This document shows, in pieces, positions 13,931 to 53,948 of a stretch of 64,000 bases of DNA. The notes beneath the pieces were generated by a model, which worked only from the letters and a program-made list of their open reading frames with translations, was not told where the DNA came from and did no database searches. Position 1 is the stretch's first letter. Every line of letters begins with the position of its first letter. The stretch lies in contig NW_005434578.1 in assembly GCF_000315625.1 (NCBI RefSeq), positions 62,001 through 126,000 on the forward strand, read 5' to 3'. This stretch comes from Guillardia theta CCMP2712 (taxonomy: Eukaryota; Protista; Cryptophyta). Made by a program: the position numbers and the translations under genes.

Positions 13931-14036
13931 TCTGGAACATATCCTGACTCAACGTTAAACGTTAGGTTTTATGATTCTAGTCTGATATTGCTCAAATATA
14001 TTTCGATCATAGCCTAGTATGCAGCAGCCCGAAGGA

Positions 14037-14957
14037 TTAAACAGACCAGCCGTTCAAAAAATCCATCTCTGCACGTGCAGGATCGTCCAGATATTCACCA
14101 TGCTTCGTAGAAACCTCAGCTGCGTCATCGTTACCATCCATTCTCAGTGAATCACCAAGCCTCAATCTCTTATTCCAACTAAAAGTCAGCGGCCAAAACA
14201 TAGAATTCTGACTTGAACTTGAATCATTCCTTGGACTTTTTCTGCGTTCCATAATCATTGTTGGACTTGATGGTGCCCGAAGATGTTTCGTTACTTCTCG
14301 TTTGTCATTCGATTCTCTAGAAAATATTGAAGAGTCTGCCAAGCTCATCAGGCTGCTTGCTGGAATCCCCAACCGCAACAAATATCTCCTCCGAAGCTGG
14401 AATGCAGATCGATTGGCCCACATGAGATGTTTGAGGCAGCTTGTCTCATTCAGTTGGAGAAACGTCTGTAAGCTTGTAGATTCCAGCGGCGTGTCATGCT
14501 TCAGACAACATTTCCCATAATCCATACCAACAATGCATCGAGATTCTCTAGAATCGTTGTACTCTGGACCGTCATCGCGTACTAGCGGCAGAGACCAATG
14601 GACCGTTCTGGATCTCAGTAAAGGGTCTACCTCAGGCGAGTCACTTCGAGCTTGTTCGCGGAGTCGTAAGCGCGGAGAAGAAAGATCCGTAGACTCTAAT
14701 AATTTCTTGAAGGCCAGGTTTGAATGCGATTCCTTCACACAAAGATCAATGCCCTCCAACTTTTTGCTGCCGTGCAACACCCTCCCTGCTCTGACTGAAC
14801 GTCGTCGTGGCCAAGGAGCAGCATTGAGAGACCATGGATACAAATCGAGCGAAGATGCAATCGGCTCTCCATCATGGTCTATGAATAATGTGCAAGCGTT
14901 CCGATGCGCATTCAATTCAGAAAGAATTGCAAGGCTATCGAAATTGTTCTTTTCCAT
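14037..14957 (-). CDS. Hypothetical protein, 306 aa, single ORF
   Basis: Long ATG-started ORF, no recognisable motif. Confidence 0.5.
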   Translation of the reverse strand: MEKNNFDSLAILSELNAHRNACTLFIDHDGEPIASSLDLYPWSLNAAPWPRRRSVRAGRVLHGSKKLEGIDLCVKESHSNLAFKKLLESTDLSSPRLRLREQARSDSPEVDPLLRSRTVHWSLPLVRDDGPEYNDSRESRCIVGMDYGKCCLKHDTPLESTSLQTFLQLNETSCLKHLMWANRSAFQLRRRYLLRLGIPASSLMSLADSSIFSRESNDKREVTKHLRAPSSPTMIMERRKSPRNDSSSSQNSMFWPLTFSWNKRLRLGDSLRMDGNDDAAEVSTKHGEYLDDPARAEMDFLNGWSV

Positions 14958-15739
14958 GTTTCCGAGCTTCCAACAGCATCTAGTCTGCGATCAGGGTTCA
15001 GGAATCTTAAAATCTGATGAAGTGCACGCGAGATAACAAACTCCAACAAATTTCGAAGTCAATCCACTTGCTTGAGAGCAAGATTTTTCGCGAAGCACGT
15101 CAAATCACAAGATATCAAACAAGCTTGGCGTGTTCAGGCAATTCAAGTGTACAAAAGAGGTTGAGAGTAACGGATCAGATGACAATAACGAAGTTAGCAA
15201 AAGATCTCTTATTAAAGTGTTAAATCAACACAAATATATTCAGAGAATTAAGTCAGCATAAAATGGGACTCCGCACGAGTTTTGAGGGTCGTGAGGTTAC
15301 TATGTCAGTGAAGAACAAGGGCTCAGACATGCGCCAACTTGTCAAGTTGAAGAAAAGCAGCCATCAGGGCATGCATTCTCCTCGCGCCGCCCTGGCTACG
15401 TACATCGCTACATCTCTTCCCGAGTCCCCCGATCCACCCGCTCCGCAGCTACAAACCAATCGTCTACGTTCTTCAATGCCCCTCTATTGAAATATGGTGT
15501 CCTCCTCCTCTTATTAGATATATCTCTGAGGCGGAGTTTTTTCGGTCCGGGCTTTGCCTGGCCTGGTCACACCGGCTGTTCGACCCGGCATGCAGGAATC
15601 ACTGCCGCAGCCCGCCAATAGTGAAAAGAGTCCGCACATGTATTGATATTAGGATAACAGGAAGGCAGCAATCAAACATAGACAGTCCACGGCTCCCGAA
15701 AAGAGGTTCCTGTCCTGCTCCTTTTTTTGGCCTCAAGGG

Positions 15740-17420
15740 GTGGGGGTTTGATGACAGGAATAGGGTGGGATGACAGACACCGGTCCTGATACGTTACACC
15801 GTGAAGGGGGTTCCTACCACACCCCCAAAATCTCCTGCGAGGTGTACTACGGGTGATGGGAGATTTTGGGGAATAGAACGGGTTTTACCGATATCCGTCC
15901 CTACTCCGTGGTCTAAAGGGGTGGGTCATAAATTTTTGGATTGGTTCTACGATGGTAGGGTAGCAATCATATGGTTGGGTGGGCTAGGGTTCCGGGGGAA
16001 ACCCACAGCCGGGTGGGGTGGGACATGGGACCAAGGGGTACGCAACTCCCCTGTTGGGGGAAGGGGTTAAAAAGGCTCCAAAAGTACCGGGTAGTTACAG
16101 ATGAAAGTATCATCATTTCATGGGGTAGTGACACGATTGGTAGGTGGTTTAAACCGACAGTCCGTGACGGGGTGGGGAACGAAAAGTCATGAAACACAAA
16201 TAACGGATTTGTGTTTGTAACGGAAGAAAGATATGAATATTTTGAGAATACGTCACCTTGAAAAGTTGAATATTTCAGCAAGAATATGAAGTATGTTCAT
16301 TCTCTTTGAAAATAGAAGACCGTGACGTACCGGCACTTCTGTCCCTCTCCGCACCGGTCCTGGCCGTCAGGAAATCGGATATATACAAGACTTTGTACTG
16401 CATTCTCACAGAACACGTACAAATGCTGATACAAATATGACGTGGTAGTAAGTGTACCTTTCGATCGAAAATGTGTATATAAATTTGGTACAAAAATAAA
16501 GCCATGGAAGAATAGGGCAGGCGCTTTGCTGGTAATGTTTGAAATCTTTGTACAAAAGTACTACGTTTTAAGCGCTAAAACGGTCCCAATAAATATTTTG
16601 GAAATTTCAAAAACAATTTTACTTCTACACCCCTCCGGTCGGATATCTGTACGGGGGTACCTTATTTCGATATTATATTGTTTTTAAAAACACCCCACCC
16701 CCAGCCGTTACGCGCGTGCATCACACCGGTATCACCTGATACAAACTGTGGTACCTTTCGGAGGAAGAGATGTACCAAATTTACTATTTGTCGGAAAGTT
16801 GTACAGTTGGTTTCTACATAGCTTAATATGTACTGAAAACAAGAAACACAGTACTAACTTTGTGGTATTATTTAACTACCAGGAGACCATTTTGGTCCTA
16901 GAGAGTCTTTGTAGAGAGGTTCTAGGAACACTACCCTGAGTTGGGATTATCTCCCTGCAATGAAATTCGGTGGTGGGGGTGGTTACCCCCTACCCCCTTC
17001 TCCCGCATCTTCTTCTTCATGGTCAAACGCCGCAGTCCAGGAGGAACAGAATCGGAGGCGGGCCAACCCTTTATTCCATATTGAGTTGGCTTGTCTGGTC
17101 TGAGAATATGTTCAGACCAGACTATACGGCGTGTATTCCAGTACAAATTCAAATTCTATCTGTACCTGCGTTTGAATTCTCTCGGAGGATGGGAGGGGTA
17201 CTGCTACGCCAACTTTTTTTGAAAAGGTGATTCTATCTTCAGGGTGGGTGGAAACGATAGCCTTGCACCGGTGGAGGAAAGTACCCCTTGGGCAGTTAGG
17301 GGTGGTCAGAGGGAACACCCCCCTACCCCCCATTGGGCCCTTGTTTGGCTCGGTTTCTGTCCTCTGGGGGTCATCCGCCTCCCGCCAACCCGCCTGCCTG
17401 CTCGCATGCACTCGGCTACC
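15740..17420. other. GpC-depleted intergenic tract (G-rich left end, AT-rich middle, C-rich right end)
   Basis: Hand count 15781-16200: 6 GpC vs 19 CpG. GGGT/ACCC/GTAC abundant. Confidence 0.75.
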
Positions 17421-17920
17421 CTCTGTCACTTGTTTCTTGCTTTCCTCTCTTGTTTTTGTGTTGTTTCCATGTGTTCTGATGTATTCATTGTATGAATGTC
17501 GTTTTTGTCCTGATTCGAGATCAATTTTCAATCGTTCTCGTCTTGTAATTTGCATCACCACATTGCGCCCTGAACATTCTGGTCAATTTGTGTGGTCTGA
17601 GGTCGTGCGATTCTGCTATAGTCTCTTGATTACACCCGCTCTCTCTTCTGCTATTGATACCAGGCTGCTTATTTCCTGTTTGCCACGCTGAGATCGCCGA
17701 AATCCAGATGTCTTTGCCGTGGAAATGCGAATTTCATCATCCTCTTCATACCCACTTGATCTTGATGCGATTTGATTTCTATGTTTGTTGCAATGCTTTG
17801 ATTTTGTTCGATTCCCCTCCTAACAAATTTCTGACTTTTCTGTCGTAGTTTTTGGCTACTCAAATACACATAGATCCAATCAAATCTCGTTTATAATTTT
17901 CTCAAGAACAACCACTCAAA

Positions 17921-18819
17921 ATGGATATGAGCGGTGATGTGCCCCTGGGCGGAGACATGGTCCAGCTTACTTGCAAGATTGTTGATCCGGAAATGAACGG
18001 AGGTCTTCGCTACAAGGCATGGACTCACCATCGTGAGTCTGTCCTTCAGCGTCTTGGTGCTTGGCAACTCGTGGCATCTGGACCGGACTTTGCCACTTTC
18101 AACGTCCCGCGTGCGATTGTGGAGGCTGCTGCCACGGAGCGCCAGGCCAAAATTCCCAAGGAAGAGCGCCGCTATTGGGGAGATCGATCTGATTTCTGCC
18201 GCTGCCTCGAGACTGTCTTGAATGAGCAAGAGCCAAAGCCACACAGCGCCCCTGCGCCTTCGTCCTACCTCCTTTTCTGCCAGGACAAGCGCCAGGAACA
18301 CAAGGAGACTGGAAACACGGCCCCCCTCGACGTCAAGGAACTTGGTGCCATGTGGCGTGCTCTGAGCGATGAAGAGCGTAAGCCTTGGGTTGACAAGGCT
18401 GAGCAGCTCAAGGCCTCCGGCGCTACTCTTGGCATCACTGGCCGCAAGCGCTCTAAGGCTAAGGGATCCGGCCTGGGTACTACCACTCCTATTCAGCCCC
18501 TCCCACCTGCAGTCCAGGCTTGCTGCAGCGAAAATGGTTTGGACGACGTAGATGTTCTCATCAGACTGGTCGAGTCCAAGCAGCCCATGGAGTTGATGAC
18601 CTACGAGCGACGCCTCCGTGTCATCATGAACCGTCTCCACGAGCTTCAGTTCCAGATTGCCACCTCCCTCCCTGCCAAGAAGCGCCACAAGCCTTCCCAC
18701 CAGCAGATGAACCAGCACATGGCTCACATGAACCAGGTACTTGTTACCGTTGCGAAGTCGTGAACCTGACTTTTCTACAGCAGCAAATGCTTCATCAGAT
18801 GCGAACCTTCGGAAATTAA
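17921..18819 (+). CDS. HMG-box protein with additional unknown N- and C-terminal domains
   Basis: APSSYLLFCQDKRQEHK...VKELGAMWRALSDEERKPWVDKAEQLK. Probable short last intron (CAG|GTACTT...CTACAG) adding QQMLHQMRTFGN*. Confidence 0.85.
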
Positions 18820-25300: not shown

Positions 25301-26310
25301 ACGAGCTCCTGCATGACTGAGACTGAGATGGCAGCAGAGTCAGCAAGCATCAAGAAGGTCGAGATGGAAGGAAGCTTCCCGGAGCGATGGAAAGGAAAGT
25401 TTCACATCCTTGACGAGAAGCACCTGCTGGTAGATCAAGTTGCTTGCCAACGCTCCTCATGCCTTGTCAGACGATCCGCGTCAAGGACGATGGGGCCATG
25501 GACTTCACGGAGGTAGAGGAGCATGGCAGCGGCTCTCATGCACCCATGAGACATGCTGCAGATGCTGCTGCTCGATGCTAGCGACCCTCTCAAGCTCAAA
25601 GTTTCTCCTCTCACGCTGCCTCTGCCTGGCATCCCCTGGGAGGTCTGTTCTCCTCTGTTCAAACATGCCCTCCTTCCTTGCCCCCTGCTGAACTTCGTAA
25701 CTTCTTCCCTCTGTGTTGATGTGCTTTGAGGTCTATCAGTGACTGATCATGTTGAAAGAACGTCAGGCTCTCAGTGTTTGAAGAGAAACTCCTTGCAACC
25801 TCCTCTTCGAGCAAATTCAGAAGGTGGCGAATTTCTCTATCCTTCCATCCACTCCCTTCCCCTCCCCTCCCCCTTTTTCTCTTCGTCCCTTCTATCTCCT
25901 TCCCTCCTCTCGCCTCCCCTCCCCTCCTCTCCCCTCCCCTCCTCTCCCCTCCCCTCCTGTCCTGTGTCCTGTCCTGTCCTCTCCCGTCCCCTCCTCACTT
26001 CTCGCTGATCTCAATCAGGCTGGTCGGTGTGATCTCTCCCTTGCAAAACGTCGTCAAGATGTTCTGCCTGGACGTGAGGAACCCGGTGAGGTCGGTGGGC
26101 GATGGCAGGACGTGCTGACGTGGCGCTGGCAGAACGTCTCCTTCGACGTTGCCAGTCAAGACAAGTACCTGGTCGTGCTCCCCCGGGACTCCAACGGGAA
26201 ACTGTGAGAGAGGTGACATGGAGGGAGAGATCTGACGTACGGTTAGGATTGTTGGAGATGTTTCTATCATCGACATGAAACAAGTCTTTGACACCAACTC
26301 GACTTCTTGA
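22357..26310 (+). CDS. Large protein with two PDZ domains, a coiled coil and a beta-rich C-terminal region (multi-exon)
   Basis: YGVGAAV...GGPAESAGLLRNDQIVTVDG and VGIGMGF...PGSAADRAGIKHNDVI. 779-aa ORF plus downstream short exons. Confidence 0.8.
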
Positions 26311-26349: not shown

Positions 26350-28040
26350 TACATTATGGACACTGATGGCGGGAAAAACTTGATTCTATCATGCTGCATC
26401 AAACGGTCTTGGGGTCGACCTGCCCGTTGGAAGCTTCTCTCGCATGTCCTGAGGTCAGTCAGAGGGCAGGAGCAGGAGGTCACACGTCCTCCTCGTTCAC
26501 CTTGAGACTGACTGTCCCGGTCATGGAGGAGGCGGCCTTGTCTGCCAGCACCGGTCAGTCTGAGGAGGAACATCGACTTTCTCTCGTACGTCTCGTCCTC
26601 TCCCGCTGGGTCCTCGGAGTTGATCATCTGCGCATGTAAAGAGTGAGCAGTCTGAGCCCGAGGGCCAGCAAGCGGCGAGCTCACCGTCTCGCTCCTCTCG
26701 CTCATCCCCTCCCCCTCTTCGAGATCGAAGGACTCCAGACTCTCCTCGTCCTCTTCGTGCACCTGCCGAGCTGCTTCAGGGGGCAGAGACAGAGGAGAAG
26801 AAACAACTTCCTGTCCTCGGTCATCACCGCTGCGCTCTGCAGCTTGAGGAAGAGAGTTCGGCTCTCAGCCTCCCCGCCCGGTCCCTCCTCCTCAACTACT
26901 ACCGGAGGGTCCAGGCGCACGTGCGCGTAGCTGCCAGGGGAGGTCAAAGAGCGCACAGGAGGGACAAGAGACAATCTCACGCGACATCATCGTCATCCAA
27001 TACAAATTTCAGCGCTGCTTCCTCTGTCTCCCCTTGAGAAAATTGTCAGTAACTCCCTGCCCTCCTCTCTCCTCCACATACCTGGCCAGTTGGAGGTAGA
27101 AGCGAAGACAGTAGGCAGGACCCCATGGCTGTACCAGGAGGTCACCAACAGCCACCTCCTCTCCTCACAACCTCCCGGACAATCTTCTCAGTCCCACTTT
27201 CAACGCTTCATCGTCGGCCGGCGCCTTTCACGACATTTCATGGTGGCGCGCAGCTTTCGGGGAACGAACCTTGATGAGGTAGCAGTTGGTCCGATGGAGG
27301 AAGACGTCGTCTCTAAGTCCGTATGATCTTCTCGTCCCCGTCAGCTGACAGCACAGCATGCGTCACCCACCGACAAGACCCTCCTCCTGCCACCTACCCG
27401 GATAACCATTGTCCGACTGCACCCCCCCTCCTTGCCAGCTGCGCCGCCCTCGTCTCCGAAGCCTGGCAGGCCTTCGGTTCCTGGCTGAGCTCAGCGAGAG
27501 GAGGAGGAAGCGAGTGTATCGCACCGAAAGGGAAGTTGAAGAAGCTGGGATGGATGAGGGGTGACTGAGCCAGGGGTGACTGAGCCTTTGATGACGTGGA
27601 GCCGTCACAAGGAGGCGAAGGGCAGACGCGTCCTTCGCCCTCGCAGCATCTCGCCGTGTATGTCCCGTGACCTGTGGCAGTCTTGTCAATGTCTGCTCCT
27701 CCTCAGCTCGTCAAGCATCGGAGAGCAGCAAAGACGCAAAGGCGAGACAGCCAATCTCGTATCCCACTCAACATCAAAGGGCATGCGTCCCATGAACGAG
27801 CTTTCTCAAATGGCAGGATCTCACATGGCAGGATCAGAAGGCGAGAGAGGTTTTCTGCTCACCATTGGATGTGGAGCAATGGCTCTCGTGCTCAAATGGA
27901 GAAGATCCCTGGACTTGCATGCAGACGTGCTCACAGCTGGCAACGTCGGGGCAACGCCCTGCTCCCGCCGCTGCTCTCAAAGTGACCAGCATCTGGAGTG
28001 AGAGGAGGAGCCATGGGAGCATGCTAGTCTTGTGCATGAT
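26350..28040 (-). CDS. Hypothetical multi-exon protein with predicted signal peptide
   Basis: MLPWLLLSLQMLVTLRAAAG start and exon-like ORFs with GT/AG borders. Structure not resolved. Confidence 0.35.
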
Positions 28041-28254
28041 ATATGCTCGTCGCGTCCTCTTTTTCTCGCTCTTGCCTCCCCCCGCCCCTCCTCCTCCTGT
28101 ACGTCCTTCCTCAAGCATCTTTGTTTGGCCTGGATAGTTCGGAGAAGGCGGAGGAAGGTGGTAGGGTACTCTTAGTGAATGGAGGGAATAAAGAGGGTGA
28201 ATAGAAATGGAATAAGGGGTAGGGGGTACACCAGCAGGGAGGTGGGGTTTAGGA

Positions 28255-28720
28255 CGGCACGGTGGCACTGCCGCAGGTTCGGCGCCCGGCGTCCGGCCGG
28301 CCGGGCCCCGGCGGCCCAAGGCGGCAAGCCGACTCCCGACTCGGTCCGGCCGGGCGAAGTTTCGAGCCGCGCCGTCGGAGGCCGGGCTCGGAGCTTGGGC
28401 CCGCCGTTGGACTGAGGCTCAGTGATGATGCGTCCCAGCCGGCCCCGTACTCACCGTGGCACTGCAGGCTGACTCGCCGTCAGGCTCGGGCCGTGACCCG
28501 GCGGCGCCGCACTGCTGAGCCCGCGGCCCCGGCCGGGGCCGGCGGAACTTGGAACTCGAACTTCATACTCCGGATTCTCGGACTCCCGGGGGCCGCCGCC
28601 GCGGCCGCCCGGGGGCCGGCGTGTAAGCGCCGGGCCCGGGCGGTCGCACGGGCCCCGCCGGGCCGGCCGCGGCGCCGGGTGGCGAGATCGGATCAGTAGT
28701 GCCGCTACTAGGCTAATGAT
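28255..28720. other. GC-rich palindrome-dense island
   Basis: CCGG/GGCC runs, GGAACTTGGAACTCGAACTTC at ~28544-28564. Confidence 0.75.
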
Positions 28721-29043
28721 GCATACTGACTCGATGATTTACAGAGACATGCGGACTCCCGAGTCTGGCAAAGGACATTCGGGCCGCACTGCACAACTTG
28801 GCAACAATCATTTGAATACTGAAAGTGAAAATGCTTGACTTCGTCATACAGTATGTCTAGATCGGTGATCCAACCCCGGGCATTGAGATTTCAGCCAAGT
28901 TCAAAGTATGACTGCAACCTGGTCGATGGTACGAAACGAGGCGATCAATGGCATTCAGTTTACAGTGACTGATGATTCGTGAAATGGGCACTCGTCCGAT
29001 CCATTGAGAGGAGATCTGCGCGCTAGACGGTGCAGGCAGTGGC

Positions 29044-30559: not shown

Positions 30560-32305
30560 GCCCCGATATGGGGGGATAGAGGGAGGGACAGGCATTCCCA
30601 CAAAGTGATCAAGTACCCCTACAGGATGTGGTATTTAAGGCTTCCAGAAGGGGGTACTGTAGTCTGTCACCCGCCGCTAGAACGGGGTACGACGACCACC
30701 CCCATATACAACTCAATTTGTTACATACTAGAAGCACGAGGTGGGGGGTGGGCGTGGGGGTGGAATGAGAAGTGGTGGAGTCAATGCAGGGGGTAGTGCT
30801 AGGGAAGCTGTGGGGTCGAATACAAGAATACTTTTCTTTTAAAAATGTTGTTAAACATTATTGAGTCGTACCAGAAAGTACCCACCCTCTGTAGACAAAA
30901 TATTGTTGTTTTGACCCGTTGTGATAGAGAGGAATATGCTTTAAAATTTATTGATTAGAAAACCTCTAACTTTATTAAAACTACCAGAAAAATAGTTATA
31001 ACTGTTCTTGTAAGCTACAATAATTTTTTAAGTCCAGGACAGCAAGTATAAAAAGTAGTAGCCGTATAACCTTTTTTTAATTGTTACTCCTACAGCCCGA
31101 CCCACTCTACACCTACTAAAGCTACCCCCACCCCCATCACTGTTCTAGACAGAAGCTCACCCCTTTAATCAACCCCCCCTGTCTCCTCCTCCACCACCCT
31201 ACCTGCCACTACCCCTACCTCCTCAATTTCTCTATGCCTAATCTTGAGACTGCCACGTACCTCTATTCGCCACCCCTGACCCCTTACACTATCAAACTCA
31301 CATTCCTTAATGCCACCGGTGTTTTCCCCTTGAAGTACCCTTGTTATCAAGAGCTGAAAACCCTCAGGTATCTTCTCCACCCCTGGCTCTCAATCCCAGT
31401 TCAGTGACTCATTGATTGTGAAACAACCCCTACCCACAAATACCACCCTTCCTGGATCTGTACCCCTCGATTCATATATGAATACCCCCTTGTTTCAGCC
31501 TATCACTCACCCTGTGAGCTAGGGTTTGAACTGATGCTTCTATAACCTGCCAACTAATTTATAAAGAACTCTGATAGTTCGGAGTGAATCAAACCTATAA
31601 AGATTTTATATGACCGTTTCTATTATTTCTGGCATGCTTCACCTGCCTGCTGCTGATGTGAATCAAAATGACCAAATCAGTTGGCGATGGACGCATTTCT
31701 TGTATATAAAACACTTTTATTGAGTTTAATTATATTGTTAATTGACAAACATCGATGCTTGTTTCACACATCGATACAACTCCTACTGTAAAAGTACTTA
31801 TAAATTCTGAACTGCTACAGTTCTCGAGCGATTTCGGTACAAAATATATTTTGAGATCTGTACAGAGATTAGATATGTTGTTGTTATAATACCAATCTAT
31901 TTTTGAAAATATATTTAAAACTTCATCGGATCCGAAAAGACAAGATTTCATCTTGCAATGTCTATGGACCCCCATGTTCTGCCTTCAAAGCGCATTCTTG
32001 GATGCTACCCTACCTGCCCCTCACCAAAATGTATACCCACCCTCATAATCAACTAGTTGTCATCCCCCTTGGGATGGTACCCCCAAATTAAACAATGAAC
32101 CCCTCAATGAAGGATTAGACCGGACTTTTACCCTCAATACTCCACAGGAATTTGGGGTCATCATTACCCAATGTCATTTTATACCGGTACGTTCAGTCCA
32201 GTACCCACCATCTCATAATCCTGTTTATAACTCACCGGTCATAGCAACGATTTTGACCCACCCTTCTACGCAACCACTCTACCCCACCCCCACCCATTAG
32301 GGACC
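30560..32305. other. GpC-depleted intergenic tract containing a decayed coding-like relic
   Basis: G-rich 30720-30820, C-rich 31080-31500 and 31960-32300. Only 2 GpC in 32041-32300 by hand count. Confidence 0.7.
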
Positions 32306-32751
32306 TACCTCTGAAGCATCCTCTCCTCCATGCAGGCGTGATCTCGTCGGCATCCAGCAGCTCCAACCCCCCCTCGTGCTCGCGCCCGGACACCTTCCGC
32401 TCCTCCCAGGCTGCTGGTCGGTCTTATCTTCACCAGCCCCTCTAGATCAATCGCCTTCTGATCTCTGAGGCCGTCAGGGTGCTTGCCGCGGAACTGCAGA
32501 GGATATTTCTTACACCTGCTCTGCAAAAGGGGATCCGTTGAAGTTCATTCCTTGTTTCCAATCGGCGACTTTGAGAAGGGATTTCAAGTCTTTGGGTGCT
32601 TGTATTGACACTGGCTGTTGCATGGTTTGCATTTGAGACAAATCTTCCTCCAGCATTCCCCCAAAGAATCAGAAATCGTCGAAGGCAGACAACTTGAACC
32701 TGGAATATATCACGTGAAGACATTGGATGAACTGATCTGGAAGTTGTTACA

Positions 32752-36699: not shown

Positions 36700-37429
36700 A
36701 ACCTTCCTCGCTTCTCCTCCTAGAGCTCAGGCAAGAAATCTTTGTGCCTGCATGTCATCGGGGGATCCTCGTGTCCTGCCCCCTGTCCGCTACCTGAACA
36801 TCCCACAGTGAGCAACAAGAGCATCCGGTCGCCTCCTCTGACCGCTCTATCCAGGTGTCAATCTTGAGTGGGGAGCGAAGAGGCTGAGGAATCAGAGCGC
36901 AACCAGAGGCCCAAGACTGAACCCTGAAGGAACGGGTTAGCGAAGGAGACGGCAATCTGCGGACGGAGAGTCGATGGAACTTGGAGACATGGGGGAACCA
37001 AAAGGTGACTTAAGGGAGGTGGAGGGCACTGGGGCAGACAATGAAAGCAAGAGAAAAGAGAGAACAGTGATGAGAATGAGAAGGCAGACGAGGAGGAAGT
37101 TGTCGTAATCATCGTAATGTATGAGAAAAGAGATGATGATAACCATTACAACAGGGGGGAACTCATGTGATTTGAGCGAGCAGGATGGAAGATGTACGCA
37201 AGCAGAGAGAAAGACAGATGACCTCAGAAACAAAATATGATGAGGGAAAAAGAGCAAGAATCATGACCGGCAGGTCAAGCGACGAGGAGTTGGAGAGTGT
37301 TCACAAGCAAGAAATCAGAAAATCGTCAAGACAGAACTACGTTTGGTGAAGTAGCAAGCAAGTCCTGAGAGGGAGGATAAAAGGAGGAGCAGAAGCCGGA
37401 GGAGAAGGAGATGGTGAGCGAGAGGGAGA

Positions 37430-39733: not shown

Positions 39734-40372
39734 TTAGGTCTTCTTTTTCTTCTTCTCTTCTGATTCTGTTGCTTCTTCTGTAAATCTATCAAATCCCGAG
39801 AAAACTGAATGAAACATTGCATTACCTGGTTCCTCCGTATCGGGGACTGAGCTGCTTTCAATGCCTACGTCCCCACCTTCGGCTTCATGCGTTTTCGCCT
39901 TGTTTTCCCACACGAGTCGTTCACCCGGAGTTAGTCGCTTCCATGCTGCTCCCAGCTCTCTCATCAGATCTGTCTGCGAGTCGAACTGTCCTGTCTGGCG
40001 CATCCTATCTCCCTCCTCCTTCACAAACAAGTTATAAGCTGACGGCGTCCTTGGTTTACGATCCGCCTTATCCTGCATGAAAATGAGAGGAAGCAAGACT
40101 AGAGAATCGATCAGACATACAAGCTTTCTCTTCTTGTGTGAATGGTCGGCCGCCATTGGCATACTCATCGGCATGGGAACATGGAGCTGAGACACAGGGA
40201 GTCCAGAGACAGGTCCATTTAGAGTGAGCAACATCTTTGCAGAGATGTGAGATGATAGCCAAGAAGGATCCAAGGAGGGTGTTACCTTCCCGAACTCAAT
40301 ATATGCATTGCCAAGATTGTGCAAAGCGGCTTGAAAAGCGTTTGGACCTCCTCCACTGGACATCGCAGGCAC
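39734..40372 (-). CDS. HMG-box protein (probably with short in-frame introns)
   Basis: KPRTPSAYNLFVKEEGDRMR...DLMRELGAAWKRLTPGERLVWENKA; acidic then basic tail. Confidence 0.85.
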   Translation of the reverse strand: MPAMSSGGGPNAFQAALHNLGNAYIEFGKVTPSLDPSWLSSHISAKMLLTLNGPVSGLPVSQLHVPMPMSMPMAADHSHKKRKLVCLIDSLVLLPLIFMQDKADRKPRTPSAYNLFVKEEGDRMRQTGQFDSQTDLMRELGAAWKRLTPGERLVWENKAKTHEAEGGDVGIESSSVPDTEEPGNAMFHSVFSGFDRFTEEATESEEKKKKKT

Positions 40373-41451
40373 ATTGCTCGGCTGTGGTGGAGGGGGGTAT
40401 GGTTGATTTGGATACCCGCCTGAGGGGTAGTCCCCGGGAAATCGAGCAAGAATTTTGAAATAAAAGCTAAAGAAAGATCCCTCCGGACAATGTAAGGCTC
40501 TGTAAAGCCTTCTTCTTTGTCACAAGCAGCTGCTCGCCTGCGAATTGGATTACGTGATGTCAGATTCTGGTCAAGAAAAGATGGAAAGATGGAAAACCAA
40601 TGCAACAAATAGAATGTGATGTTCGAGAGAAAGATATATTTGAGCAAAATTTCACGTTGACAAACATCCAAAGTACGTGATCATGTCGACGCAACAGATC
40701 TAAACTAATACGACGCCTTGAGCTTTCTGAATCCGCGTTCATCGTTCAAAACGGATAAAGCATTAGATGCATATGGCACGGAACATAAGAATGTAGCGCA
40801 ATCAATGATGTGCATCGTACTCTACATCTTGTGTCGAAACAAGACAATGTTGCTGGATGTGGCCAAACACATATCGATGCGACGGGGGAGACACAAACAC
40901 AATTCAAAATGAACAAACGTGAATCAGACAGCAAACATGAAGATCACTGAGCTGAGTTCCGTCAATCTCTCAATTTCGAGGCATAATGGAAGAAGAGGGA
41001 GGGAGGTAGAAGGACGCAAGATGGGCCTCGAGCCATCGGGTGCGAGCGTTAGTTTGCGAAGGGCTTCATGGTTTGAAAGGAGGAGCGGACGAAGATAACA
41101 AAAACTATTGAATAGGAGAGGGGGTAGGAAGCAGAGGGGGGGTGGTAGGAAAGAAGGGTAGGAGACAAATAGGGCAGTGGTAAGAGAAAGGGTACTGGGG
41201 GTGGTAGGACGGTGGTAGTAGGGAGCAACGAGGGAATAAATAGGAGGGTAGGTGGGACAGGATGGGGAAGGATAGGAGAACGCAATTAGTGGGTATGGGG
41301 TAGCGATCTACAAAAGGTGGGGTCATCAATGGAGTCAAGGTAGGGTAGGGTAGTCCAATTAGGGTAGCAGTTTTATTTGGTACCTAGCTGTATCAGATCC
41401 CAATACAAATATAAATATATTCGGTACCAAGCTTTTTAAAACCTTTCAAAG

Positions 41452-41483
41452 GCCAAACACGGGTGGCTCCACCCGTGTTTGGC
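41452..41483. repeat. Perfect 15-bp inverted repeat (hairpin)
   Basis: GCCAAACACGGGTGG-CT-CCACCCGTGTTTGGC. Confidence 0.95.
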
Positions 41484-41667
41484 TCACAACTCCACGACTG
41501 TTTGGGGTATTCGGGTAGGGGTACTTTTATTAGTAAAATATCTTATAAAAGGGTCTTGTAGTTGGGGGTCGTTGCTTGGTTCGACGTAGCAATCTTTAAT
41601 TGCAAACCGTTACTTATATTGTAGTAACTCTATAATCATCGTTCTGGTACTGTTTAAAACTATCACA

Positions 41668-42720
41668 GGCTGAGTCAGCCGGGCCCGCCGGCTCCCGCGG
41701 CGCCGAGTCGCGGCTCACGGTCAGTCCAGTGGCCGGGCCTCTCACTGTACGGTCACGCGGGACGGTCCGACGGTCACGGTCGGACGGTCAAACAAACTAC
41801 AGTGGGCCGGCCATCGAGTCGGCGCCCGACCGTGACTCGCCGGGCACTGCTCCGGGGGCCGCCCCCGGCCGCGTCGGATGGCAGTCTTTCCGAGTTCTCT
41901 ACTACTCACCGTCGGAGGACACTGACAACTGTTTGATCCGACTCGATCCGATCGGATCACTGCGCGGCCAAGCCCGCCGTTCGCTGAGGCGAGCCAGGCT
42001 CGGAGTCGGAGGCTTGACATTCTGGAGTCCGGCCCGGGCGCACCGACAGTGTGCCAGGTGACTCGCCTCCGTCACTGGACTCCAATTCAATCCGATCTGG
42101 CACCGTGGCCCCGCGGGCCCCGAAGTTTGCCAGACTCACAGAGTCACGGTCAGCACTGTGACCGTCGGACGGCGCCGGGCACGGCCCGGGCTGTGACTTC
42201 ACGGACAGTGACGGTGGGGCCGGCACCGTTCAACGCCGGTCAGGTTCACGACTCAGGCTGTCGACCGTCACGGTCAACCTACACGGTCACGTCGACCGTA
42301 CGGTACCGTACCGGCAGTACCGGCGGGCCGGGCCCGGCCGCCCCGGCGGGCCGCGGGACGGTACGGTCAGTGACGGCAACCACCGGCAGTGCCACCGTGG
42401 CACTGGCGGGGGGGCCCGGCCGGACCGTCCCGGGTGACGCCGGGCCGGAGTCACCGCCCCCCCCCCCCGGGCCCCGGCCTCTGAGACGGACGGTCATCGG
42501 ATGATCAGCGGGCGCCGGTCGGTACTATAGGCGGCACGGCACGCCGGGCACGGGCCGGTATGCGGCGGAAGTTGGCTGAGCCCGGCCCGGACCAGTGGGA
42601 CTCCGGAAGTCCGCCCCTCAGGTAGTACCGCCGGTCGTACCGGGCCTTGTCTCAGTACTGAAGTTACTGATTTTTAACTTAACTTTGAGTAAAGAAGTTA
42701 CTGTCGGTTTTCAAACTTTT
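41668..42720. other. GC-rich palindrome-dense island with right-hand AACTT/AAGTT cluster
   Basis: Numerous short palindromes and ACGGTC micro-duplications; lies between divergent genes. Confidence 0.8.
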
Positions 42721-42917
42721 CGGCACCCACCGTGGCAACGTCACTATCATCCTACCTGGCACCCCTCCCCTCCCCACCCCCACCCCCCATCCGCCCCCCC
42801 TTCCCACCCAAGTCATCATATTCAACCCGGGGTCAACTGGTACCCCTAGCTCAAATAGGATCCCCCCTACCAGTACCCTACCCAAGGTCCGACCATTAGC
42901 GGACTGCGAGGACAGCC

Positions 42918-44635
42918 ATGCGGGGGGCGCGGGACTTACACAGGGCACCATCGAGGGAGGATCTTTATTCGAGCCAGAGGAGCATCGACTCTGTTGCTTC
43001 CAGATCCCTTCTGACTGGAAATGGAACGGGCATGAGTGGTGTGGGTATATTTTTCCAGCAAGAGGGCGATGGCAAGGTCTACGTGAGAACCATTGTCAGC
43101 GGAGGTTCTGCAGAGAGAGATGGTGAGTTGGATGGTTGTAGTTCATATCAAAATCGACTTCTCATAGTATACATGTTGTCATGATGAACTACCTCCATGT
43201 ACATTTCTGCTCCTAAGTCTGGTTTCAAACAGGAAGAGTTCGGGTTGGCGACGTAATGTGCGGGGTTGACGGTAGAGATGTCATAGGCGAACCAGTCAGC
43301 GTCCTTAGAAGCCTGTTGCTTGGACATGAAGGAAGCACGGTTTAGTTGCCAAGTTTATGAAATCTCATCTCAAGTATGGTCTCTCTGCAGGTTGTACTTA
43401 CTTTTGCAAGGGCCGTTGAAGCTGGTATGGACGCCGAAACTTCTGACATGAACTCTGGAAACACGGTATGTGAGCAGTCTAAGATCTCGATCACAAACAC
43501 TTTGGTGACTGATAGGCACTTATGCGATTCATCAGGTCATTGCAAAGTTTGACGTGGAGCTTGTGCGGGGCAGTCCAGAATATTTCAACAAAATGGACTC
43601 AGCACGAAAGTAAGATCTTGCTGTTTGAGACGATTCTCTTGGAATGATGCAACGCAGATATGAAATTGAAATGCAAGACCTGAGACATCAACTCAAGCAG
43701 ACGTTGAGTGAGGAGAAAGAAATCTCTGAGGAGGTCGAACGGGTCAGACGTGTGCTTCAACTTGAGAGGGGGGCGTCTGCCAGGCGAGAAAAAGAATTAG
43801 AAGAAATCAGATCTTCCCATGCTCGAGAAGTAGCGTCTTTGTCAGAATCTTTGCGAAGAGCTGAACAATCTCGGCGCGAAGCAAGCGGGCGGCTTGCTCC
43901 TGTGAAATCAAGGGAGCAGGAGCTTTCAGAAGAGCTTGCTCGAATGAAAGAGAAAGACCGGTGCTCATTCTGCGATTCTGCCTGAAATATTTCTCTGAAG
44001 TTCATTGCACCTCAGATTGCGCAAAGAGTACGTAGAAGAACTTCGAAAGAGACATGAGGAAGAGACTTCAAGGTTGGAGGCACAACTTGCCAAAGAACAG
44101 CGAGCCAGGAGAGAAGAGCAGGTGGTTTTGAATTTAACTAAGCAAGGGCGGCTTATGAATTCAACACAGGCTGCCAGAATCGAGGTGGAGCGTGAGCTGG
44201 AAAAGTCCAGAAAGGAGCTAAAGAAGGAGCTAGATATTCAAAGATCAACTGTTGACCAAGACAAATCGTACCGCGAGCAAGTCGAATCGTGAGTCATGTC
44301 TCATTGCTATCATTGCAAACTGAAGAATCATAGATCGAAAAAGAAACTGCGAGACGTGGTTGAGACTATGGAATCTCTGTATGCCATGATGAAAGACTTG
44401 GACGACTGGAACAATCACGTTCAGGACGGACAACTGCATACGAAGCTGGTGAGTAATCGTCACACGATGAGCAATGATTCCAGGTATCGAATTTTTTTCC
44501 AATGGTTTGTGGTTGACGTTTAGCTAAGATGGTGAAGGAAAACTTTGGCCTCTAGTTTTTTGAAATTCCAATGGAACAAACGAGAATGGAGAACAAAGAT
44601 CAAGTATAGAAAGATGAGAGACACATTCTATTGAG
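42918..44635 (+). CDS. PDZ domain + coiled-coil protein, multi-exon
   Basis: SGVGIFFQQEGDGKVYVRTIVSGGSAERDG-RVRVGDVMCGVDG...LRSLLLGHEGSTV; E/R/K-rich heptads. Confidence 0.8.
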
Positions 44636-44685
44636 TATAGCGTACTAAATTCTTGCTTTGATAGCAAGCTCTTCTCGCTGCTGCA

Positions 44686-47328: not shown

Positions 47329-47759
47329 GGGCCGACTGTTGTTTGTTGTAGGTACATGACATGGTGTTTGCGGACAGCCAGGTGATAGTTTGATATCTTC
47401 ACGCCTCCAGTGTGTCTTGCTTCAATGCCAACTAGAACCATGAGGGAAGGGTGGAGACTAAGGGAGGGGGAGGGTACGTGGGGGGGGGATGGGGGGGAGG
47501 GCGGCCCCGCAACTCAAATGCACTGAGGCGGGGTACTGTATGTTCGGGTGACAGGGTAGGGATCATGTGGTGTGGAGGCTCATGATAATGTTTCGATTTT
47601 GCAAACTTTTATCCTCCATCGTTGGTGACACATGTGTTTCTAGGGAGTTCCGTTTGAAAGTACATTCCCCGATCATTAAACTTAGTAAACCTGAAACTCA
47701 GTTGAGACCGAACCGTCCTTCTCTGTTTAGTTGTGGTAGTTACCGACGGTAACTTCTCA

Positions 47760-48020
47760 GAAGACTGATCAGTCAATGGCACTGGGCGGTCCCGGATCGG
47801 ACTCGATTGAGTCGGACGGTACCGTCACGTGACGGCTGGCCCGACTCGCCGTGATCGGGGTGACAGCCGTGATCCGTCGGACTGTCCGATCGGACCGTAC
47901 TACGGTACTCCCGGCCCGGCGGCCACCGTGGCACCGTCACGGGAGCGGCTGAGCGGCCGGCGGCCCGGTACGGTACGGTAAACCGTGCTGAACTCCGAAC
48001 CGGGCTAGTAGCCGCTTTGG
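47760..48020. other. GC-rich palindrome-dense island between divergent genes
   Basis: GACGGTACCGTC, CCGTCACGTGACGG, CCGATCGG, CGGTACGGTACGG. Confidence 0.75.
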
Positions 48021-48478
48021 CCAGTCAAAAGCTGCAGGCTGGTCAAAAGTTCGATGCGACCTACGGGGCTATTGATCCCTCAACAAAGAGAGCAGCCCCG
48101 CTCCTACCCCACCCCTCGCTCCAACTACATGAAGGACCATCCTGTGCTGTGTACCACCCCCTTCATGATATGAGACTACCCACCCTAGGCTAATGCATCA
48201 AATTCAGGTAGTTCCGAGGCCCAAGTCGCCAATGTGCCCTGCCCTCCCGGAGTCCCTACCCACCCTCAACCCCATTTTGCCACCACCCCACGTACTTAAA
48301 TCAGATAGCACCTTGCAAGGTGCGTTGACAACCAAGTATCCGTACTATGTGAAAATTACCTTTACCTCAATTAGATTATCTTGTACCTATACCTCATTCT
48401 TTGTTTCAAGCACGAAGTACCACCTTACCTGTGAAAACACCGTTACCCGACCCTACCGCCTACACCTCATTTTCCCCC

Positions 48479-48486
48479 TATAAAAG
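48479..48486 (+). promoter_or_regulatory. Candidate TATA box
   Basis: TATAAAAG 48 bp upstream of the oxidoreductase ATG. Confidence 0.5.
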
Positions 48487-48526
48487 AAGGGACCGAAACT
48501 TCTCTGCCGTACTGCTCTGTGCTGTC

Positions 48527-49534
48527 ATGCCCGAGAATCGTCAACTGCTCCTCCGTCGCCGTCCCTCCGCTGCTCTCAGCCAGAAGGATGTAGAGATCGT
48601 CTCCAACGCCACTCCCAGCCTCAAGGATGGCCAGTTCCTCGTCAAGAACCTCTATGCCTCCGTCGATCCTACTCACAGGATCTGGATGTCTGAAGACGAC
48701 CAGTACCTTGCCCCTGTTGATCTGGATGCTCCCATGAGAGCGATGACGTATGGTGTGGTAGAGGAGAGCAAGAATCCTTCCTTCCCTGTGGGAGCTCATG
48801 TGTTGGGCATGGGCGGCATTCAGCACTACTATGTTGGAGACCCCGCTGCTGACCCTGGCTTGACTGTTGCCAAGGAGATCGAGGGACTTCCAAACACCGC
48901 ATGGCTGTCTGTGTGCTCTGTGATCATCGGGCTTACTGCATGGGTTGGAGTGAATGAGATCTGCAAGCCCAAGCAAGGAGAAACTTTTGTTGTTAGCGCT
49001 GGAGCCGGAGCTGTTGGCTCACTCGCCGGACAGCTTGCTAAGCTGCGTGGCGCACGTGTGATAGGGTTTGTGGGATCTAAGGAGAAGGCCGATTGGATTG
49101 TGAATGAGCTTGGATTTGATGGCGCGATCAATTACAAGACTGATGACATGTTGACGAGGTTGAAGCATCTTGCTCCCAACGGCGTTGACAGCTACTTTGA
49201 TAACACGGGAGGCCCTTCGACCGAGGCTGTTCTCCGCTGCTTCAATAACAATGCTCGCATTGCCCTCTGCGGCATCATCTCGGGCTATAACACGGGAGAC
49301 TTTGCGCTCAAGAATTTCCAGATGCTCCTCCATCGTCGTGTGAACTTGCAGGGCTTCATTTGCCTCGACCACCTCGACAAGTACGAGCAGGCCCTTGCGG
49401 AACTTATCCCTTTGGTAAAGGACAAGAAGATCAAGTACCTGGAAGATATTCAGACTGGCATCGACAACTACCCTGACGTTGTGAACATGTTGTTTGAAGG
49501 ATCCAACAAGGGAAAGCTCATGCTCAAGTTCTAA
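48527..49534 (+). CDS. NADP-dependent alkenal/prostaglandin reductase (MDR family, PTGR/CurA-like)
   Basis: YASVDPTHRIWM, GLTAWVG, GETFVVSAGAGAVGSLAGQLAK, GVDSYFDNTGG, RIALCGIISGYN, GSNKGKLMLK. Confidence 0.93.
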   Translation: MPENRQLLLRRRPSAALSQKDVEIVSNATPSLKDGQFLVKNLYASVDPTHRIWMSEDDQYLAPVDLDAPMRAMTYGVVEESKNPSFPVGAHVLGMGGIQHYYVGDPAADPGLTVAKEIEGLPNTAWLSVCSVIIGLTAWVGVNEICKPKQGETFVVSAGAGAVGSLAGQLAKLRGARVIGFVGSKEKADWIVNELGFDGAINYKTDDMLTRLKHLAPNGVDSYFDNTGGPSTEAVLRCFNNNARIALCGIISGYNTGDFALKNFQMLLHRRVNLQGFICLDHLDKYEQALAELIPLVKDKKIKYLEDIQTGIDNYPDVVNMLFEGSNKGKLMLKF

Positions 49535-50829: not shown

Positions 50830-51297
50830 CTACTGGACCGAGCAAGCATCCTTTTGCTTGGATAAATCGCGCCAAGGAAACTTGTCTCCATAAGGGTCTT
50901 CAAGGATCACCTTGCGGCCCTGCTTCGAGAGGATCTTGCCATCCCGTGGATCGACCAGTACCAACAATGGCATGCTATCATGGCCAATCTCACGCTCTAT
51001 TGCCTCTTTGATGTCCCGCTGACTGAAGGGCAGCGCGAGCCATGGCATCTGGTGAAAGTAGTGCTGGAAGTCCCTTTCGGTCCGATCCCCAGAGATCAAG
51101 ATCACCTCCATCTTCTTGCCCTGTGAGTTCATCCGGGAGTAGACGTCGATCAGCGAGGGCGTGAAGCACTTGCAGGGTGTGCACCATTCAGCAGAGAAGT
51201 AGAGGCCGACCACCTGCTTGTCTTGGAGAGTGTCGAGTGGAACGAGGGATCCTCTGGGGTTCAGGAGACACGTATTTTCGCCGAAGAATCTTTCCAT
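50830..51297 (-). CDS. Nucleoredoxin/tryparedoxin-like thioredoxin
   Basis: VGLYFSAEWCTPCKCFTPSL, EVILISGDR, MPWLALPF, DPYGDKFPW. Confidence 0.92.
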   Translation of the reverse strand: MERFFGENTCLLNPRGSLVPLDTLQDKQVVGLYFSAEWCTPCKCFTPSLIDVYSRMNSQGKKMEVILISGDRTERDFQHYFHQMPWLALPFSQRDIKEAIEREIGHDSMPLLVLVDPRDGKILSKQGRKVILEDPYGDKFPWRDLSKQKDACSVQ

Positions 51298-51654
51298 CCT
51301 GAGAGTGTAGAGGTAGAAGGCTCTGTCAGACGTCGGAGAGGGTAGTCGGAGGAGCTGGAGAGGGATGGGAGGATGCGTGTAGGTGCTGGAGGGGATGGAA
51401 GGAGCGCGTGGGGTGCAGGCGGAAGAGGCCTTCCGATGTATTTAGAGGGAGTTTGCCTCTTACTGAGAGGGTATTTTTTCAGTCATACGGAGGGGTGGTA
51501 GTGTCGCTGAACGCAACTTTCAGTGCCCCGTAATAATGACCATTGTTGACGCCTCAGACCCACCCCTCCTTTGGTAGAGCTGAAACACTACAACGCAGGG
51601 GTCAGTGCAAGAGGAATTCTGCTCAGGGAAACCGTTGAATAATTGATAATAAAG

Positions 51655-52345
51655 CCTGTGACTGTCGGTGGCCGGGAGCGGGATCCGCGGCTCAGCTGCC
51701 GCCAGTCACCCGCGGCGGCGGGCGGCGGCCGGGGCCCGGGGCAGCCCGGCCGGCACTCAGCGGCGGCGGCGCCCGCCGTCCGTCTCCGAGTGACCCGCCG
51801 GAGCCCGGGCTACGGTCCCGATCACGCCAGTGACTGACGGACGGTGCAGCCGGCCGGGATGCCGGGTGGCTGGCGGACCGTCTGAAGGCCGCGCAGGCTA
51901 GCACCCGGGGGCCCCCCGGCCCCGGGCCCGGCGCCCGGCCCGGGGGGCCCGGAGTGACGACCGACGGTGCGCCGGCCCTGGCAGGCTGACTCGGAGCCTC
52001 GGAGTGGCACGACCAACGCCGTCACGCCGGTGGGCCCGGGAGTCAACGGCCCCAGTGGAGGGCCCCCGGGCCCGCCTCGTACTCCCGGGTCCGGCCGGGA
52101 CACTCGGAGGCTCCGAGGCTCCGAGTCCTGATTGTCCTCCGGGAGTCCAGGACTCACTAAGTCACTCTGCGGCGGCCCCTTCCGTGAGTCGCAGTGAGCC
52201 GCAGAGCGGCCGGTGCCACGCCGGTGACGGTGAGCCGGCCCGGCCGGGCGGCTGCCGCTGGCCAGCCTCCGTGCCCGAGGCCCGGGGGCCGGGCCCGGCC
52301 GCCCGGGGCCCGGCCAGCCGGGGCTGACCGTACAGTGGCGCCTAT
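51655..52345. other. GC-rich palindrome-dense island between divergent genes
   Basis: CCCGGG/GGCC runs, TGACT/GAGTC words, no credible ORF. Confidence 0.75.
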
Positions 52346-52467
52346 GACCTGCACCAAATTAAGCCTTCTTTTTGCAAATTGGTAGTACGTTTTGTACCAG
52401 GAGTTCAATTCTATATTTATTTAATTTGAGTGGTTTGTTTGGTAGCGCCTTTCCAACACAGGGGGAC

Positions 52468-53948
52468 ATGAAGTCGATGGCGCGATGGTGGGGAGTTGGC
52501 GGCAAGGAGAGAGGGCGACGGAAGGAGGCGATGGCGGAACAAGATAGCCATCATGCAAACTACCATCCCCCTTCATCTGCTCTCCGCTCCTCGTCTTCGT
52601 CTCTTCATGTCCATTCCGCCTCCCATGGACCTGCCCAGCTCGCGGGAGTGGGGCTGGTAATAGGGAAGCGTAAGCAGGGGTACCTTGTGAAGGACATCTT
52701 GCAAGGGACAGGGGCAATGCTAAGCGGGATGCGAAGAGGGGACCTCATCGTGCAGGTACGTATCTCGACCACTTGGTGTCATCGACACTTGCTGGCTCAG
52801 GTTTGCGTTGATTCTCTAGCAGGTCAACGAGAGGGACGTGGGTCCTTTGAGCCTGGAGGAAGTGACTAGTGCGATACTCGGACCCGTTGGGAGCATCGCA
52901 AAGTTCAAAGTTATGAGGAATGCGCATGAACGGAACGTGCTGTTGGAGTTCCTCGTGCTGCGGGAGCTCAGAGCTACTCAGGACCCCCTGTTTCAGATCA
53001 AGTGCGAGGGCAACAAGGTGACGAGGTCACACCTCCACCTCCAGTGCGCGCAAGATGGAAGTACGAGAAGTTCCGACAAGAAGAGAGAGGGAGAGAAGAA
53101 GCCAGAAGAAGAGCTAGAAAAGATGGGAGCAAGAAAGATGAAGACAAGCCTAGGGGCAGGGGAAGATCCAGAGACAGAGATAGAGATACAGATTGAGGAA
53201 GAGACAGAGATAGAGACAGAGATAGAGACAGAGATAGCGGAGGAAGTAGGTGGTAGTCTCTTTGCTTCTGGGGTCGGCGAACTTCCTCCTTCTTCAACTT
53301 GTGGTGAGATCACTCCGGATCCACCCTGGGACGGCCATTGGCCTGTTTCTGGAGCCAGCAGCCTCGTCGACGTCGGTGTGGATGTGCTCGTGCTCGAGGA
53401 GTGCGGAAGCTCGTGGAAGGCCTGCCGGCTGCAGCTGACGCGAGAAGGAAGACTTGTGCTTCCTGGGCACAGTCTAGATGGGAAGCTGGTGGTATGGGCT
53501 CAGCCGCAGCTGGAGATGTACCGCCCCGACATGTCGAGAGAAGACTTCTCGATGATGGGAAGAAGGATGTGCGTGATGGTAGAAGGGGAACACCTCATCG
53601 CACACAGCCGCCATGGTGCGATCAATGCAGTGAAGGCTGAGAGGTTGCATGTGATGGCGTTAGACTCGTCGACACGGGACAGGTACAAGTTTGCTTTCAT
53701 GATTGTTGTCCTGCACTCCTTCATGTTTTATTCCTTCTGTCTTCTGTCGATCAAGTGATGCATCTTCTTATTGGTTTGCTACCTCAGATATGTTGAGGAA
53801 TTCATCGCAGTGGTTCAACGCCGTGAGCTGGGAGCGCAAGGTAGCCGAAAGCACTCAGGATGTTATGCCCCTCTGTAGTGAAGGAGCAGCGCAATGGCAA
53901 CCACAGCAGATCAGCAGCGAATGTGAGACGATGCCACAAACAACATGA
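52468..53948 (+). CDS. PDZ domain protein with possible PH-like C-terminal region (multi-exon)
   Basis: AGVGLVIG...YLVKDILQGTGAMLSGMRRGDLIVQ-VN...EEVTSAILGPVGS; YWFATSDMLRNSSQWFNAV. Confidence 0.7.

Follow-up and report, generated by a model that had tools for sequence, protein, structure and literature searches.

What gives the spacer between two divergent genes of the cryptophyte Guillardia theta CCMP2712 its polarity? The spacer (40900-42918) lies in a 64,000-nt stretch of contig NW_005434578.1 (positions 62,001 to 126,000; hereafter the window, whose own numbering is used throughout) between a minus-strand HMG-box gene and a plus-strand PDZ gene. Its plus strand is G-rich next to the first gene and C-rich next to the second. 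The original prediction described a stereotyped series of spacer modules, oriented by the promoters through loss of cytosines from the strand antisense to the gene. We found that the G-rich and C-rich arms are one feature on opposite strands, a 150-400 bp array of short C-rich words (CYACCC, GTACCC, CCTACC, CCCACC) that read along the sense strand of the neighboring gene and lie in untranscribed DNA. The genes diverge, and the plus strand thus shows a G arm and then a C arm. We judge it somewhat probable that these arrays are a direction-sensitive sequence feature next to transcription units, a counterpart of the start-site C>G bias of plants and fungi and of the plant Y patch.

The position of the arms relative to transcripts comes from assembled transcriptome contigs of two studies (runs X1 and X8) and from two metatranscriptome contigs (L033 and L034). 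Mapped 5′ ends are contig ends, not capped 5′ ends, and the only raw RNA run (X19) consists of 3′-biased, 60-nt reads that do not inform start sites. The HMG gene has its ATG at 40363 and introns at 40072-40119 and 40235-40285. Its mRNA extends at least to 41068, the assembled 5′ end in X1 (40942 in X8), so that the 5′ untranslated region (5′UTR) measures ~705 nt. The gene start had been expected near 40900, which is ~540 bp too far upstream. The leader itself (40363-41068, minus strand) holds several upstream ATGs and is not C-skewed. The G arm begins exactly at the end of the assembled HMG transcript, and its last word is 59 bp from that end. On the other side, the assembled PDZ mRNA starts at 42897 (X1) or 42917 (X8), and the last word of the C arm lies 13 bp before it. 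GC skew is +0.68 at 41050-41360 and −0.61 at 42725-42890, and the sense strand of the G arm (41068-41390) has a C content of 0.42 and a G content of 0.08. No RNA contigs lie over the G arm, and none cover 41082-42657. Measured skew and GC content bear out the claimed order of G arm, AT-rich stretch, GC island and C arm (Table 1); the AACTT cluster that was to stand between island and C arm is not a module of the spacer, as described below.

Table 1. Features of the focal spacer, its flanking genes and the other tracts of the window.
Feature	Position	Strand	Basis or remark
HMG-box gene, 5′ part	39734..41068	−	RNA contigs, splice joints, spliced open reading frame with HMG box
G arm	41068..41390	−	Word array C-rich on minus (sense) strand, directly upstream of HMG mRNA 5′ end
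AT-rich stretch	41391..41667	.	39% GC (measured over 41361-41667)
GC island	41668..42660	.	70.7% GC, skew −0.01, CpG observed/expected 1.07 (window-wide 0.78)
26-nt element copy and flanking repeats	42660..42703	+	Core 42666-42691
C arm	42720..42895	+	Word array C-rich on plus (sense) strand; C 0.49, G 0.13
PDZ gene	42897..44654	+	RNA contigs; ATG 42918; eight GT..AG introns, 45-110 nt
C arm	32191..32335	+	Upstream of transcript 5′ end 32336, 678-aa gene; last word 27 bp away
G-skewed, sense-pyrimidine tract	36961..37160	−	36 bp upstream of riboflavin-fusion gene transcript 5′ end 36925
G arm	47400..47580	−	Upstream of minus-strand gene starting 47330
Small GC island (240 bp)	47760..48000	.	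Sequence; palindrome-rich
C arm, then TATA-like box 48479-48486	48080..48486	+	Box 41 nt before ATG 48527
G arm	51297..51470	−	Directly upstream of minus-strand ATG 51297

The arms are built of words and are not merely skewed. In five tracts of the window, CCTACC, CTACCC, TACCCT, TACCAC and CCACCC occur at 23-42 times their genomic rate, the top hexamers at 35-40 times, and the reverse complements of the enriched words occur zero or one time. CYACCC was observed 74 times against 20.7 ± 4.7 expected from a first-order Markov model of each tract, a 3.6-fold excess that is somewhat inflated in that part of the tract set was picked by these words. GTACCC and AGTACC likewise exceed the Markov expectation. 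Across the genome (an assembly of 87.1 Mb in 669 contigs, eukaryotic, with GT..AG introns of 45-110 nt), three words within ~80 nt gave 3,227 hits, versus 1,141 for a reversed control. Long perfect runs of a 5-nt unit of the same word family (CTACC/GGGTA) occur at G000:C46:364182-364693, G000:C16:76841-77158 and G000:C46:88733, a sign that slippage may lengthen the arrays. The window has 48 tracts that are 100 bp or longer and reach an absolute skew of 0.5 or more, 4-5 times more than the 8-13 in 1-kb block shuffles.

Base composition speaks to the proposed loss of cytosines from the antisense strand. Under such a loss the sense strand should keep its usual C, gain A and fall in G+C. The tracts show the reverse, and we reject this cause. 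On the sense strand of eight window tracts, C is 0.35-0.49, G 0.08-0.17, A 0.14-0.28, T 0.17-0.37 and G+C 0.49-0.62. A does not exceed T (mean A/T skew about −0.06), and the A content of the arrays examined is 14-31%. The word structure is a further property of the arms that cytosine loss cannot explain.

The other half of the prediction, that the direction of the skew follows the orientation of the neighboring gene, is supported in the window. At four of the five RNA-mapped 5′ ends, a sense-C tract stops 0-36 bp upstream, with its last word 13-59 bp away where words are present. Upstream of these four ends, 120-bp segments reach a sense skew of −0.59 to −0.82; the segments lie within 40-160 bp at three ends and at 440-560 bp at 36925, where the first 150 bp have a skew of −0.52. 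Ten of the 15 gene starts that can be placed in the window have a 120-bp segment with a sense skew of −0.4 or lower within ~0-560 bp upstream, and at nine of these starts it lies within 0-240 bp (segment offsets run from 0 to 440 overall). For open reading frames (ORFs) of 200 aa or more, the closest upstream word cluster is sense-C in 6/7 cases.

Word-based tests favor the same orientation in an independent sample of 200 kb from two other contigs, which brings the total with the window to 264 kb. Gene anchors on these contigs are long, unannotated ORFs, which are crude. Among ORFs of 180 aa or more, the word sites in the 900 bp upstream are sense-C in 33 versus 17 (p 0.03). For ORFs of 200 aa or more, the closest upstream cluster of three or more words is sense-C in 6/6 cases within 800 bp and in 7/8 within 1,200 bp; window and other contigs together give 13/15. 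In 19 of 27 oriented tracts, the 1 kb that follows downstream has a positive purine skew (p 0.013). Word sites downstream of stop codons are also sense-C, in 27 ORFs versus 9. These results fit words that are sense-C on the 5′ flank of the adjacent gene and probably on its 3′ flank as well. The link between words and gene orientation beyond the window is supported, though not firmly established.

Better gene models were hard to come by in this DNA. Codon bias is low, a transcript search with ORFs matched contigs for 2/12, and Pfam supports 1/10 of the ORFs that flank tracts. C-rich tracts lack stop codons and therefore give rise to false ORFs of 80-270 aa. Home-made gene predictions (codon usage, Viterbi strand labels and a spliced-ORF dynamic programme) were too weak and were not relied on. 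The spliced-ORF programme fused adjacent genes, and a metaplot of boundaries from the predicted labels was circular because the labels mostly tracked purine skew.

Several observations weigh against a promoter-proximal, gene-oriented feature. Five of the 15 gene starts in the window are without a sense-C tract, and at the fifth RNA-mapped 5′ end, near 15016 (contig L034, gene 14040-14957), no tract adjoins. Between X1 and X8 the 5′ ends shift by 20-126 nt, and assemblies could break at low-complexity tracts, so that part of a tract might be transcribed. On the independent DNA, only the word-based tests are positive and the numbers are small. There, the nearest strong tract chosen by skew alone showed no association with gene orientation (25 versus 32), nor did the nearest ORF of at least 150 aa (10 versus 6). 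These null results are themselves weakened because many ORFs are internal exons and because the tracts make false ORFs. For the order of the arms, an annotation-free count across the genome compared G arrays of two words that precede a C word with the mirror pattern, at gaps of 40-480 nt. C-then-G equals or exceeds G-then-C over this range, which is unexpected for a promoter-only element. At a gap of 40-70 nt there are 360 G-then-C and 374 C-then-G pairs, and at 250-280 nt there are 458 and 655. With a stricter, 8-nt third word the counts are 181 and 264 at 250-280 nt, and 148 and 168 at 450-480 nt. The C1 sample provides local exceptions: at 25400-26000 a C array runs straight into a G array, and at 26700-27050 a G array stands to the right of a mini-island.

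To account for these arm orders, arrays would have to lie in 3′ flanks as well, or G-rich words within 5′ regions. Such G-rich words and tandem neighbors could add to the arm-order counts. In the 264 kb, G-then-C pairs have a minus-strand ORF on the left and a plus-strand ORF on the right in 3/5 cases and none are convergent, while C-then-G pairs have a minus-strand ORF on the right in 3/3. The arrangement of G on the left and C on the right is not an intrinsic spacer module. Since both arm orders are common, the polarity tracks gene direction, probably on both flanks, and is not built into the spacer.

The other spacers that were said to share the layout lead to a similar view. A clear counterpart exists at 47330-48527, with both arms and a palindrome-rich island between them. 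At 51297-52468 the G arm is followed by an island (51650-52330), and the plus-strand ATG at 52468 has no C arm ahead of it. The spacers at 14957-17921 and 7305-8728 have weak skews only and no island. The layout is a recurring theme, not a fixed module.

The focal GC island is a block of its own, untranscribed, symmetric between the strands and made of odd palindromes. Odd palindromes, here with arms of at least 4 nt and one central base, reach 3-5 times the first-order Markov expectation in the islands (z 5-10), and two coding controls showed no such excess. The focal island also holds many short inverted repeats. It is a single-copy stretch in the genome, which rules out that it belongs to a dispersed repeat family. 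A search of 40800-43000 against Rfam gave no match. More palindrome-rich GC islands are found at 13001-13940, ~100 bp past the 3′ end of the 14040-14957 gene, and at 28161-28800. They are not clearly between divergent genes, so islands are not limited to divergent spacers. Flank skews anchored on islands were inconsistent because the composition filter also takes GC-rich coding DNA. Two further observations concern the focal spacer. The AT-rich stretch between G arm and island contains a perfect palindrome with 15-nt arms and a 2-nt gap (41452-41483). A genomic DNA run (X15) has no contig at 42461-42657, the right end of the island with its run of 11 Cs, and covers the remaining spacer at ~5x; the gap is probably a dropout caused by GC or homopolymer content.

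What had been read as an AACTT cluster at 42660-42720 proved to be one inserted copy of a dispersed 26-nt element. A 10-bp direct repeat flanks the copy (42660-42669 and 42694-42703). The core is single-copy within the window and has 1,172 copies in the genome at up to two mismatches; a reversed control has 0. The sequence at 42665-42698 is found at ~300 times the local depth in DNA and RNA runs, with flanks that differ in every contig. Further copies occur in contigs L023-L032 and at 72990-73015 of the C1 sample. Copies often stand between direct repeats of 5-10 bp that resemble target-site duplications, often within GC-rich or word-array DNA, and the element is present in both orientations in RNA contigs. 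It may be a tiny mobile or templated insertion.

Two of the mapped 5′ ends belong to a convergent pair of genes. Contig L033 maps without mismatch from 32336, through three spliced introns of the riboflavin-fusion gene, to 36925. It joins this minus-strand gene and the 678-aa plus-strand gene in one spliced contig (34788-35254), and the 3′ ends of the two genes therefore overlap or abut. The riboflavin-fusion gene has a 39-nt intron in its 5′UTR (36795-36833). The contig of the 678-aa gene starts exactly after a pyrimidine run and CAG (32300-32336). This site resembles a splice acceptor, cis or trans, and is possibly one; the contig carries no spliced leader.

How the arrays are kept, or made, can be weighed from these data. 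We lean towards arrays that are promoter-proximal and direction-sensitive. They would be maintained by binding a strand-specific factor or by shaping chromatin, and would thereby place and point initiation. Similar arrays would probably lie in 3′ flanks too, and none would be a passive footprint of cytosine deamination. A more specific version is conceivable, which we put forward tentatively and regard as rather unlikely as a whole: lineage-specific arrays of CYACCC-type words on the sense strand would flag both borders of a transcription unit and give them their direction, and a separate local copying process would write the untranscribed palindromic islands between divergent starts. Promoters and boundaries so built would differ from the TATA, CpG and Y-patch types. 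Unlikely, yet a live rival, is a broader form of the earlier cytosine-loss idea, in which transcription brings with it a mutation process that differs between strands, or a local "sequence-writing" process, that makes the arrays, and perhaps the islands, and the orientation is a by-product. The writing could proceed through R-loops or exposure of single-stranded DNA in upstream antisense or read-through transcription, or through slippage or template switching in open chromatin. A transcription-coupled process would account more easily than a pure promoter element for an orientation that apparently follows the gene on both flanks. The grading of arrays into microsatellite-like 5-nt-unit runs agrees with writing, and islands packed with odd palindromes fit small copying errors. 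Selective and mutational causes are both debated for the skews of fungi and plants (PMC3315797, PMC555766). Plain C-to-T loss is excluded by the composition, though, and the 3.6-fold excess of specific words and the sharp arm edges at mRNA ends also speak against writing. The arms are without stable RNA in the contigs; exposure of single-stranded DNA by upstream antisense transcription, the first of the causes originally suggested, is accompanied by no stable upstream antisense RNA in the transcriptome contigs.

The remaining explanations fare worse than a direction-sensitive feature. The C-rich tracts could be transcribed leader, either 5′UTR or a polypyrimidine signal of an outron as in spliced-leader trans-splicing, with contig ends as processing or assembly breakpoints. 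Spliced-leader trans-splicing is known in Guillardia theta and affects at least one fifth of its genes (PMC5619915). The acceptor-like start of the 678-aa gene contig and the variation of contig ends between runs point the same way. We nevertheless hold this to be improbable: the 17-nt leader or other unaligned letters are found on none of the contig ends, AG precedes no end other than 32336, tracts of 150-400 bp made of A-containing words go far beyond the pyrimidine run of a splice site, and at 48479-48486 a TATA-like box stands between array and ATG. It is a shade less credible still that the arms are low-complexity DNA unrelated to genes and that the window was a lucky sample, with the association a selection effect. 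The skew-alone nulls on the other contigs, the frequency of both arm orders across the genome and the crudeness of ORF-based anchors would all suit this idea. It sits badly with the independent word-orientation tests (7/8; 33 versus 17 ORFs), with the tract directly upstream of four of the five mapped ends and with the agreement between arm order and the flanking ORFs. Least credible of all, and very unlikely in our estimate, is a replication origin fixed in the spacer, or a site there that breaks recurrently, the other cause in the original prediction. A skew that changes sign in an untranscribed spacer with a GC-rich core is what such a site might leave. Replication origins in bacteria and in human skew domains show an upward jump, from C to G, across a wide domain. 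The plus strand of the spacer switches from G-rich to C-rich, the skew is limited to word-built arms of 150-350 bp, and the opposite arm order is equally common in the genome. Two genes that face away from each other give this mirror image of G and C by themselves, so it is not evidence for damage or replication centered on the spacer.

To our knowledge, the promoters of cryptophytes, a major algal lineage with a complex cell, are almost wholly uncharacterised. We did not find a paper in the searchable literature on Guillardia promoters, on these words or on such arrays in cryptophytes. If the arrays mark and orient transcription units, they would offer a simple sequence cue for start sites and so better gene models, and candidate parts for expression tools. 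They would also be a new case for asking whether strand bias at start sites is selected or mutational. The plant telo-box and the Myb "AC element" are likewise short C-rich words (ACCCTA, CCTACC) near gene starts with an orientation preference, and we take this resemblance as a lead only.

The arrays are most similar to the start-site bias of plants and fungi, where the sense strand beside the transcription start has more C than G (PMC555766, PMC3315797). That bias marks the majority of genes (~70% in Arabidopsis and rice), though not every gene; in Guillardia, 10/15 starts of the window have a tract, and on the other contigs only the word-based tests are positive. Divergent pairs show mirrored skews in both. 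The plant and fungal bias peaks at the start site and extends into the 5′UTR, whereas no Guillardia tract passes the assembled mRNA end. The arrays are also longer (150-400 bp), more extreme (skew −0.5 to −0.8) and drawn from a small word family, and they may occupy 3′ flanks as well. The plant Y patch, reported as specific to higher plants (PMC1832190; PMC2094075), shares with the arrays a direction-sensitive, C/T-rich sense strand near the start site and the lack of a known link to methylation. It is a short, pure C/T run, whereas the arrays contain A (CTACCC, GTACCC) and extend over hundreds of bases of repeated words. The focal spacer also recalls the bidirectional CpG-island promoters of vertebrates with their R-loop GC skew (PMC3787257), in having a GC island that is not depleted of CpG between divergent genes, with skewed borders. 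Vertebrate start sites fall within the island, and downstream of them the sense strand is rich in G. In the focal spacer it is upstream of the start that the sense strand is rich, and in C, the mapped 5′ ends are ~240 bp (PDZ) and 600 bp (HMG) outside the island, and the island is untranscribed and built of odd palindromes. A gene-oriented strand bias near starts is already known; what is new in this variant is that it takes the form of word arrays, that these are long, lie upstream of mRNA ends and may be present on both flanks, and that they are paired with palindromic islands.

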